From Saccostrea cucullata (Eukaryota): a stretch of DNA of 64,000 bases. Every line of letters begins with the position of its first letter. The first letter of the stretch is position 1. Made by a program: the position numbers and the translations under genes. Shown here in pieces: positions 23,901-28,752 of this stretch. The stretch is taken from positions 434,001-498,000 of the forward strand of contig NW_026937360.1 in the NCBI RefSeq assembly GCF_032062105.1, in the 5' to 3' direction. The notes below the pieces were generated by a model. It searched no databases. It saw only the letters and a program-made list of their open reading frames with translations, and was not told the origin of the DNA.

Positions 23901-25772
23901 CCATACAACGTCTGCTTAAACTAAAATAATACAAAAAAGTAGTACAGGGTCGAAATGTTTCCTACACTTCGTGTAAACCACTTCAAAAAACTACGTTACC
24001 TCAAAGTTATCTTTTTGATGCTGAAATCATTTCTTTGTGCCGAGAAACATGAACCTTGGCGAGGGTCTTTGAAGTGTTTGTATAAGTCTTAAAGTTATAT
24101 AATTATTGTTGAAACAAAAGTGACTCGAAACGTTCAGTGTCATCTAAGAGCTTTGAAGTAAATATGATAAAGTAGCAAAATGTGACATTTCTCACCTTGA
24201 GCCATGCCAGGGGAGATCTCATGATATGACTGACAGGTGTTTCTCAAAGTAGTGGTACAGTGAACGCAAAACTGTGTCATCTTTCCTCCTTTTCTACACT
24301 TTTGACTGTATTATTTATAGTTTAAACTCACAAAAACAGATCTTTTTTCTGCTCGTTGTTCGTGGCACCATTCAAAACTTGGATAATGTTTTGATTCCTC
24401 GTTTCCAGTGCGCCAGGTATACTGTGGTCACAAAATAATGTTACCTACAATAAACATGTTATATGTTACAGAATTATTCGTAGTTTGTTATTCTGAAAAC
24501 AAACAAAATGTTATAACATATAGAGGTATAATACACTATGACGAGATTCTGATCAAGTAAAATTTTTGGGACAAAAATATTCGGAGTTGAGTAGTGCTAC
24601 AGGCCTGAAAATTGTTTCAGAAAAAGCTGATGACATTCACAGTAAAATCAGTTAGTGCTAACAGCTAAACATTTTAATTTTTTTAATACAGTTTATCATT
24701 ACATATTTTACTACTTGTTGATTCATTTACTTCTAAGTAAAAGTATGATTAATGTAAACGTTTTGTAATTATGATTTTAAACGATATTTTCTTTTTTCAG
24801 ATGGTGCCGCCACAACATCAAATACATTTGCGAAGAGAAAAAGAGTTGAACTACTATCAATGGGTTCCGGTTATGTTACTTGTGCAGGCACTCATGTTTT
24901 ATATTCCCTGTATTATTTGGCGGATTTTAAATGGCCAGTCGGGAATAAATGTGGACAGAATCGTCAGTCTTGGTAGCAATGCCCAGTTTGAAAGTCCGGA
25001 GAATCGAGCTCGGACTATAAAATATCTTGTGAGACACGTTGATAGATGTCTTTCAAATCAACGAGATACACGAGGAACCTGTTGCGTGCAACTACGACAT
25101 ATTTTGTCCACAAAACTATCTATACTGTGTGGTCGACGCTATGGAAACTTTCTCATGGCAACATATTTCCTCATGAAAGTTTTGTATATTGCTAATGCCA
25201 TTGGGCAGTTGTTCTTGCTCAATGAGTTCTTAGGAACAGATTACAATGTCTATGGATTCCAAGTTTTAGACGAATTAGTTAATGGAAAAGAGTGGTCTGG
25301 TTCTCACCGATTTCCAAGAGTGACTCTCTGTGATTTCCAGATTCGCCAAGTGACCAATTTACAACAGTATACGGTGCAGTGTGTTCTGCCAATTAATCTC
25401 TTTAACGAAAAAATATACATTTTTATGTGGTTTTGGCTTGTTTTTGTATGCATATTTTCTTGCTACAGTTTAACTAATTGGATGTGGCACATGGTTGTTC
25501 CAGCGACGAGAATTCATTATGTGCGAAAATTTTTGAAGTTGATGGAACGGTTAGGTACTGGACCGGACCGAAAACTCGCGACACGGTTTGTACTGGATTA
25601 TTTGCGACATGATGGAGTGTTCACGCTAAAATTAATCGGAAAGAATTCAAGTGACATAGTGGTGGCGGAAATCATTGCAGAGTTATGGGACATGTATCGC
25701 AGCAAAAAATGCATCCAAATAAGGACTAATAACCAAAATTCTGGCCACGAAACGGAAGAGGCGGATGTATGA
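20951..25772 (+). CDS. inx: Innexin (invertebrate gap-junction protein), 407 aa, 2 coding exons
   Basis: Exons 20951-21202 (GAG|gtaaag) and 24801-25772 (ttttcag|ATG), phase 0. Innexin motifs: DDLVDRLN, QYVGDPIRCWCP, NNICW, YYQWVP, FPRVTLCDF, QCVLPINLFNEKIY; four hydrophobic segments. The ATG is preceded by an acceptor (tttttag|G), implying upstream 5'UTR exon(s). Confidence 0.97.
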
Positions 25773-28752
25773 CTAAGCAACGGTAGGATACCACGTGGTT
25801 TAAATGAACAGTTGGAAGAAAAGGAAACGGAAGATGACGTCACCCAAGTGTAAAAGGAGTTCTTGTGGGAATAGAGTAGTTATGGTTAGATCGACCTTAA
25901 TCGCATTCGGGCGTCAACGACTCGTCCTGACGATGTAAATGAACTTTTGCAACAACTAAACCAGCATTTCTAGTCCTTCGATTGCATTGATACAATAATT
26001 CCCTGTTTACACACAAGAGATAACAAAAGACAAAAATATAGAAACATGTAGTAGAAGAAATGAAATGTTTAAAAGATCTAAGGATATGGGGAGGAGAATT
26101 TTTAAAATACGAGAAAATGCTCAAAATCTAAAATATCATTCGAAAATGTTCAATGAAAATTTTATAAATTCATAAGAATTCAAAGCTTTTTTTAGACGTC
26201 CACGATCGACATTTGCACAATGTCTTCCTTAAGCACACAGTTGAAGATCTACACCTTCTATGCATTTGTCGCGTTGCCTTCACTAAATAAAGTAGCTCAG
26301 GAAGACCCGGACGAAATCTTTGCAAAGAATCTCCTTCTAAACAAACATGGTGACTACAGAGCACAGATCATTCCAATGTAGGAGAAAGGTTTAGTGTAAA
26401 ATTAACAAAAATAAAGACATGAATTTCATATGGGAGGCGTGCCAAAATCTTCATTAAGGCCTTAAACTGTAAACTGATTCATATGCAATCAAATTATTTG
26501 CACAGACGTGAAAAAAATCTCCTAGGAGGTTCCTGTACATGTTTGAAATCCACCACGTGACCATAAAAAGCACAACATCCAAAGTTTGAACCAAATATGA
26601 CAAAACTCTAAAGGTGCTATTACATTGCTTTTTGCCATTTTTCATCAAGTGTTTAAGAGGTGTTCGTAATATTTTTCATTCTTTTAATGAAAGCAAAGCT
26701 TTTTGTCAGTCATGTTTCATTTTCCTCCATACATTTTCGCCTGAGTCATGCAAGAGAGATAAAGCCCTATATTGACTCATAGTATGTTCGTAATTTTTAT
26801 TTCCGAGATGTTGACTTTTGTATTATAAGACAGATTTTTATCAGAACTAGTTTTCACAGTGTAATTTTTTCAATTGATTTTTAAAACTAATGATCTTTTA
26901 TGTGATATGAATTCGTTTATAATATCAAAGATCTCCAATGGTTTGCTACCTGTATTTTTGTTTCCATTTTGAAGAGAAGTATTGTCGAAAGAGAGCATCA
27001 AAAGCCTGATGTAGTATGTAAAAATTAACATTTCAATGTCTTGACAAATCAAGTCTCTGTCGTTAATTACAAAATAATATTTTCCACTGTATTTTGAAAT
27101 TTTCAAAGATTATGATAAGCCCTTCAGCATAAGGTAAAACAAAATAAGTTATACATGTAGTTATGTAATCTTTGGAGTTTCTTACCGTTATCTGATGCCT
27201 TTAGTTTTAGAGAATATGATCGCCTTGTTTATTACAAGAATTTTTTCTTATTACATGTTTTTTGAAATTTTTGTCCTTTATTGTGGCACTGGATACAATT
27301 TGAAGAAATCTCTTTCATCGATAGTACATGAGTATGACAGTCTGACAAAAAACTTAAATTTTGATGAATGGTGTTATAGGGATAGATCTGTTATGTTATA
27401 GAGAAAACTATTATCTAACATGTCTAAAACAGTAGAGTTTTAGGAGTTCTTGGTTACAGACATGTATTTTAAACCGCCCTTTTTCATTTTCTGCATTCAG
27501 TCTCATTTCCTTTTTAACCCTAATGATTGTAATTTCCTCTAAGAAAAATAATTCAAAGGATTTATTTGGTCGTTTGAAAATTGGGAAATAAATGTTTGAT
27601 CCCTGAACACAGTGAAAAATTAAACTATAATGGGAAATTTAAAAACTGTTACTCTTTTCCAAACTGACATATTAAAAATTGAAGGTGAATGAAGTCAAGT
27701 CACAATATGTAAATAATCTTCTGTGATGAATAGTATTTTTGAATGTGATATTGATCCTTTCATGTTTGGCTACAATTAACATAACGTTATGTGTGTAGTT
27801 GTTATTTTACACAAAATTTTGAAGTAGATTGTAAATTAGCTGTAACAGCTTTCACGTCTGGTAACAGAAAATTTATCATCTTAGAATAAATAAATGTATG
27901 GTATTGCTCTTATTCAAATCTAATTAGATCTGGACAAATGTTCATCTGAATCCATTATACGGCCTTTCTCTATTCGATGACTTGCTATATTATCGTTGTT
28001 GTATTTTATGTCACTTAAAGGTTCACTATTATTTGTAATAACAAAGACAACAGATGCTGCATGTGTAGTGTCACGTTGTCTGTAGTACTGTTTGTTGAAA
28101 TCACATTGAAACTTCTTTCCAAATAATTACGAAGTAAATATTTCACTTTACACTGTGTATAAACAAAAGAAAGTATTAATTTTTCATTACAAGAAATACA
28201 AATTATATAAATGCAGGAAGACGTTAATTAAATCTCTCATTAATTATATTTGTGCAAATAATTAACCCATGTCCGGTGATATAGAACTCTGAGGAACAAC
28301 TACATCTTAATCATACTGATCACACAATTTAATAAATTATTCATCTGATAATTGTTGGTAAAGCTGTTTGCCATTAGAGGATAAATTGTTCAAGTTTTGA
28401 AGATATTTATTAAAATAGTTGTTTTGTTTGTATTCAACAAGATTATTGTAAAGTAGAATTTTATTTCATTGTTGCATAAAATTGTTAATTTATTATGATT
28501 ATTCATTTTCCTATTTATACATGCAGAATCTTTCAATATAATGAGTGATATAATACATGTATGTTGCATATTTGATACTGTACAGGTTTCATGAATAAAT
28601 TCAAGTCGATTATTTTTCAAATATTGATTTTATTATCTTGCATAACATTGCTTAAACATTGACATTACAAAATTGATACATTTTAATAACAACAATTGAA
28701 CACTTATAATACGCCCCTACATACATGGTATGTATCTATGTTCTGGTCTGCG

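Follow-up and report, generated by a model that had tools for sequence, protein, structure and literature searches.

Comparative sequence evidence for probable programmed stop-codon readthrough in a bivalve innexin, with a long form that may exchange one PDZ-type C-terminus for another

Does an innexin of the oyster Saccostrea cucullata always end at its first stop codon, or do some ribosomes read on into a C-terminal extension? The question arises from a window of 64,000 nucleotides (contig NW_026937360.1, assembly GCF_032062105.1), in which a sequence-only reading had noticed an innexin ending in TGA-CTA-A, followed by 26 open codons up to a TAA at 25851-25853 and closing on Thr-Gln-Val. The window letters bear this out, with positions 25764-25778 reading GAT-GTA-TGA-CTA-AGC. 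The best explanation, to which we assign a probability of roughly 0.85, is programmed stop-codon readthrough, with long subunits most likely shifting the use of PDZ scaffolds. That readthrough itself takes place at this stop is, judged from the comparison of sequences, highly probable.

The gene lies on the plus strand and gives one Pfam Innexin match (PF00876) per exon, at 266.9 and 86.3 bits (cut-off 25). Its first main coding exon (20950..21202; ATG at 20951, 84 codons) was delimited by tblastn with database orthologs, the Pfam match and AG/GT ends. It is followed by a phase 0 intron with GT..AG ends (21203..24800) and by the last coding exon, counted to the first stop (24801..25772; 323 codons, C-terminal Ala-Asp-Val), which was placed by sequence, ortholog matches and Pfam. 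This last exon is 99.7% identical to an unc-9-like innexin of S. cucullata and 93% identical to Magallana gigas. The spliced model was searched by separate exons, and no joined or read-through sequence served as a query. Further upstream, a 5′ exon (17809..18158, plus strand) matches a Magallana transcript at 85%, and a likely alternative first coding exon (1495..1521, plus strand) shares 9/9 residues with the start of one Magallana isoform, a weak protein match (E 0.23). Many N-terminal isoforms of this innexin are listed in databases for all molluscs; together with these alternative 5′ exons they indicate that both ends of the channel protein vary. Elsewhere in this genome, at least seven innexin genes cluster on one contig (G000:C15112:363746-428492).

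Four transcript-type contigs cover the site, of which one bears this species' code while the remaining three come from a sister organism. They represent spliced RNA, since at 24799 their contiguous match to the window breaks off and the sequence of the upstream exon takes over. All four reach ~26860 with no joint across the two stops, both of which lie on a single unspliced stretch, and the 3′ UTR (25854..26863), also supported by comparison with Magallana, is continuous with the coding exon. The first stop (TGA, 25770-25772) is embedded in the context GTA-TGA-CTA plus one further base (25767..25776). This base, 25776, is A in the window assembly and G in 4/4 transcript contigs as well as in the Magallana and mytilid orthologs. 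The window A reflects either a minority allele or an error of the assembly; no second haplotype copy was found in the assembly for this base. The G in transcripts and orthologs makes the full UGA-CUAG the usual context, and with it falls the caveat, voiced in the sequence-only reading, that base +7 is A and not the optimal G. The ten letters are then those given for AQP4 (PMC4132726). The same reading had found no such stop context in the other four genes of the window; this holds for the sole gene compared, a 2-hydroxyacid dehydrogenase (glyoxylate reductase-like, 55149-58421), which ends in TGA-TAT. Exons at 58794-60871 on the minus strand resemble, by motif, what we take to be a GH18 chitinase.

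The 26 codons beyond the stop (25773..25850) form a candidate extension that bears the signature of purifying selection at the protein level. Compared with Magallana, 17/26 residues are identical with no indel, and third positions account for 15 of the 24 changes (p 0.003). For this one species pair, dN is 0.245 and dS 1.75, close to the dS of 1.80 in the coding exon, which gives a dN/dS of 0.14 in frame, whereas the two other frames yield 1.5 and 2.0 (Fisher p 5e-4; two oyster genera). At the second stop, TAA in the window (25851..25853), Magallana has TAG, a synonymous change that keeps length and frame. Consistent with this boundary, nucleotide matching to the Magallana mRNA by blastn stops at 25852, at the second stop and not at the first, and the UTR immediately beyond contains many indels. 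In the sister organism, 11/11 gap letters between 24799 and 26122 likewise fall past the second stop (25924 onward). The freedom of the synonymous sites argues against an RNA element, and folding of 131 nt revealed no stable 3′ hairpin in the window (z +1.06), Magallana (+0.48) or the mytilid (+0.87).

Orthologs of the window innexin (group A) form one clade with a support of 98/95; Logan and ENA contigs take their taxon labels from the named entries of the clusters to which their proteins belong. TGA-CTA occurs in 5/5 bivalve lineages, in three of them as CTAG. The Magallana ortholog carries TGA-CTAG, 26 codons and the end V-T-H-V before its TAG, the mytilid TGA-CTAG, 25 codons and A-S-T-M, the scallop-type ortholog TGA-CTAT, 17 codons and Y-G-T-V, and the venerid clam TGA-CTA-TAG with a one-codon extension. 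Neither the mytilid nor the scallop tail is alignable with that of the window. In the venerid (L117:1223-1340), 35 further codons are open after TGA-CTA-TAG, compatible with either a two-residue extension or double readthrough. The signal is absent from the group A orthologs of a chiton (TGA-TCT), a snail (TAA-CAC), an octopus (TAA-CGA) and one unplaced mollusc (TGA-GAC). As it is found in all bivalve lineages and not outside them, TGA-CTA in group A looks, from these sequences, like a bivalve gain. The retained TGA-CTA, the frame of equal length, the dN/dS of 0.14 and the synonymous change of the second stop lend strong support to the initial claim of programmed readthrough.

A scan of JGI metagenome contigs returned no direct ortholog, only other innexins, which were used as a control set; a clam paralog discussed below came from the same scan. 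TGA closes 24 of 60 distinct metagenome innexin ends and is followed by CTA only in this clam gene, leaving TGA-CTA in 0/59 of the others and in none of the remaining innexin paralogs of this genome except one (L002). Metagenome gene callers give Trp for TGA in P0009, P0037, P0132, P0258-P0265 and P0302, which exposes readthrough tails but also produces false ones. P0009, which seemingly runs past its stop with Trp and might have indicated editing, has TGA-GAC in its DNA and is an artefact of the gene-caller code. Two region searches with P0132 and P0037, entries with W at the stop, yielded no further extended forms.

L002 (G000:C14040, minus strand) belongs to a different clade, group B, and is the only other innexin locus of this genome with TGA-CTA. 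Its first stop at ~1462-1464 and second stop at ~1315-1317 delimit a 48-codon extension ending in F-E-T-E-V, 45/48 residues of which match the Magallana-cluster entry P0037. Paralog B of the clam has TGA-CTAA, 49 codons and the end S-E-T-E-V, that of the snail TGA-CTAA, 76 codons and V-T-S-V, and that of the octopus TGA-CTAG and 105 codons with no PDZ-type end. Three of these four tails (oyster, clam and snail; not octopus) therefore close on S/T-x-V, and all four share a similar, conserved amphipathic start, while the tail middle has diverged between oyster and clam. Between two snail lineages the tail evolves with a dN/dS of 0.089 in frame (p 1.4e-6). The normal end of group B is S-N-V, a class I-type end, in every species seen. 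In the chiton paralog B (L125:1290-1410), TGA-CAC precedes 37 open codons whose start loosely resembles that of the other B tails, possibly a weaker readthrough case. The ACUAAC of paralog B was considered as a QKI or branch-point motif and rejected, because it is kept neither in octopus nor in the window innexin. Paralog B is the stronger and older case of the two. Group A joins mostly annelid-type innexins (100/99), and A and B are not sisters in the tree, which was rooted at its midpoint only; two origins are hence the simplest reading.

How readthrough would act can be outlined as follows. The UGA-CUAG context would weaken termination, and a near-cognate tRNA would place a residue at the stop in a few percent, and up to roughly a tenth, of cases; for UGA, near-cognate tRNAs carry Trp, Arg or Cys. 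The ribosome would continue for 26 codons to the UAA and produce a 434-residue innexin alongside the 407-residue form, and both would presumably co-assemble in the same hemichannels. The long subunits would conceal the conserved D-V terminus and expose an acidic tail with a T-x-V end. Most likely, this tail would change the choice of PDZ scaffold by which the channel is held, and hence the channel's trafficking, plaque position or turnover.

The Thr-Gln-Val end (25842..25850; Thr-His-Val in Magallana) is a class I PDZ-type match. A strict S/T-x-V end, however, is limited for this gene to the two oyster genera: the mytilid has S-T-M, the scallop G-T-V, and the class I end is lost in the venerid. 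The normal end, -EADV, had been set aside as not matching class I, yet it is not ligand-free: D-V is invariant in 15 molluscan group A orthologs, mostly as E-D-V, which is a class III PDZ-type end. Since the normal termini are conserved (D-V in group A, S-N-V in group B), readthrough would exchange one terminus for another and not add a ligand. We regard PDZ binding, or PDZ exchange, by the long tail as slightly better than an even chance. Terminal Val is found in 63/117 innexin cluster representatives, and this genome has at least 75 PDZ domain matches. A role at electrical synapses appears doubtful, and both the ZO-1/Dlg type of partner and the electrical-synapse site proposed earlier are guesses.

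The tail might instead be translated by readthrough and serve as a spacer, a degron or a trafficking signal that only masks D-V, with T-x-V being incidental; we consider this a respectable alternative at odds clearly below even. It accords with the variation of the bivalve tails in sequence and length (26, 25, 17 and 1 codons), whose sole common feature is a hydrophobic residue at the last position (V, V, M, V, L), and with the venerid, in which two added residues suffice. It does not account for the T and V that both oysters hold through synonymous change, nor for the ends of paralog B, which are ETEV in oyster and clam despite the diverged middle and TSV in snails.

Far less probable is that the open frame is no functional extension at all but plain 3′ UTR, or else the remains of a former coding tail now decaying downstream of a newly gained stop. 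The chance of such a pattern is ~4e-5 per gene, the product of P(TGA) 0.4, P(CTA) 0.012, P(open ≥26 codons) 0.18 and P(S/T-x-V/L/I end) 0.04-0.05, where the first term derives from the 24/60 control innexins and the others from local sequence. With ~30,000 genes per genome, about one such case is expected in each, so that the pattern in a single genome is not decisive; at the level of sequence, the decisive element is cross-species conservation. Synonymous divergence matches that of the coding exon, whereas replacement sites have changed much less, and the indel-rich UTR starts just past the second stop. A decaying relic is further at odds with the first stop being ancestral, as D-V precedes it in chiton, snail, octopus and bivalves alike.

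Joining of the tail by splicing, with CTAG serving as acceptor or GTATGA as donor, is very improbable. CTAG does contain a YAG and GTATGA resembles a weak donor, but an acceptor after CTAG would be in phase 1, whereas the upstream intron is in phase 0, and the sequence upstream is purine-rich. Moreover, scallop (CTAT) and paralog B (CTAA) lack AG at this position, the Val codon varies among GTA, GTC, GTT and GTG, and the four contigs show no joint, with the reservation that contigs drop rare forms. Equally improbable is recoding of UGA as selenocysteine or its A-to-I editing to a Trp codon: although oysters have many selenoproteins, molluscs edit RNA and two 3′ UTR blocks (26245-26307 and 26435-26702) are 72-78% conserved with Magallana amid unalignable UTR, these blocks match no Rfam family, no Rfam model including SECIS matches 25600-27600 at E ≤ 5, no ortholog has Cys at the site and several have TAA, all RNA-derived contigs read TGA, and neither process would explain the fixed CTA.

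On the basis of these comparisons, the window innexin is a real, conserved readthrough candidate of the UGA-CUAG kind, and one that is new for gap-junction proteins as far as the literature was searched. The earlier impression that no such case had been described for molluscan innexins agrees with our search, which covered few subscription journals and found no paper on innexin or gap-junction readthrough, nor any for molluscs and PDZ. Comparative support for functional readthrough in molluscs has so far been thin and the scaffolding of innexin channels is little known; the present case points to an undescribed route to two forms of electrical-coupling channels. Annotations of these genes all end at the first UGA, so that cloned innexins in Lymnaea, Aplysia or octopus work may miss the signal of the native mRNA. 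As paralog B is present in gastropods with identified coupled neurons, its long form is directly testable there. That the trait seems to have arisen separately in two clades, each time with a similar new end, suggests that oligomeric channels are repeatedly retargeted through leaky termination. More tentatively, a readthrough switch may have evolved twice in molluscs, once in each of two innexin clades, and would swap terminal PDZ ligands on a minor fraction of gap-junction subunits. The version in paralog B would then be older than the divergence of bivalves, snails and cephalopods and would set electrical-synapse anchoring, as AQP4ex does for water channels.

Among known systems, a Pancrustacea study that relied on the same type of evolutionary signature as here detected abundant readthrough in no group but insects and crustaceans; neither its text nor the supplements searched contain a mollusc or innexin term (PMC5100048). 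The molluscan unc-9-like innexins of Lymnaea (PMC7052179) and Limax (PMC8049302) belong to the same family, with paralog groups that predate the molluscan classes; neither paper mentions PDZ motifs, and the stop-codon and C-terminus passages of both contain no readthrough form. C-terminal motifs of connexins (Cx36/Cx35/Cx34.1, Cx43) bind ZO1 at electrical synapses (PMC8081524). In these gap-junction channels the final residues provide the anchor to a PDZ scaffold, as predicted for the innexin, but connexins are not homologous to innexins, carry the motif at a fixed end and have no described readthrough switch.

Closer in mechanism are OPRK1, OPRL1, MAPK10, MDH1 and LDHB (PMC4132726, PMC4207609), with which the innexin shares a short signal that needs no 3′ structure, a conserved second stop and a targeting-type new end. 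The known cryptic motifs of that class are mostly peroxisomal PTS1 signals, and it has no gap-junction member. UGA-CUAG drives readthrough without structure and UGA-CUA alone gives 1.5%, as measured with reporters in mammalian and fungal and not molluscan cells; the AQP4 context is GUA-UGA-CUAG, and that of OPRK1 mostly the same (PMC4132726). AQP4ex makes up ~10% of AQP4 and sets its localisation, and the normal AQP4 end, SSV, binds the alpha-syntrophin PDZ domain (PMC6444679). AQP4 differs in protein family and phylum, and the predicted innexin extension carries a class I PDZ-type motif at its own end. Nevertheless, both are oligomeric membrane channels with GUA-UGA-CUAG at the stop and extensions of similar size (27 added residues in the innexin, 29 in AQP4), and in both the extension would conceal a conserved normal terminal ligand.
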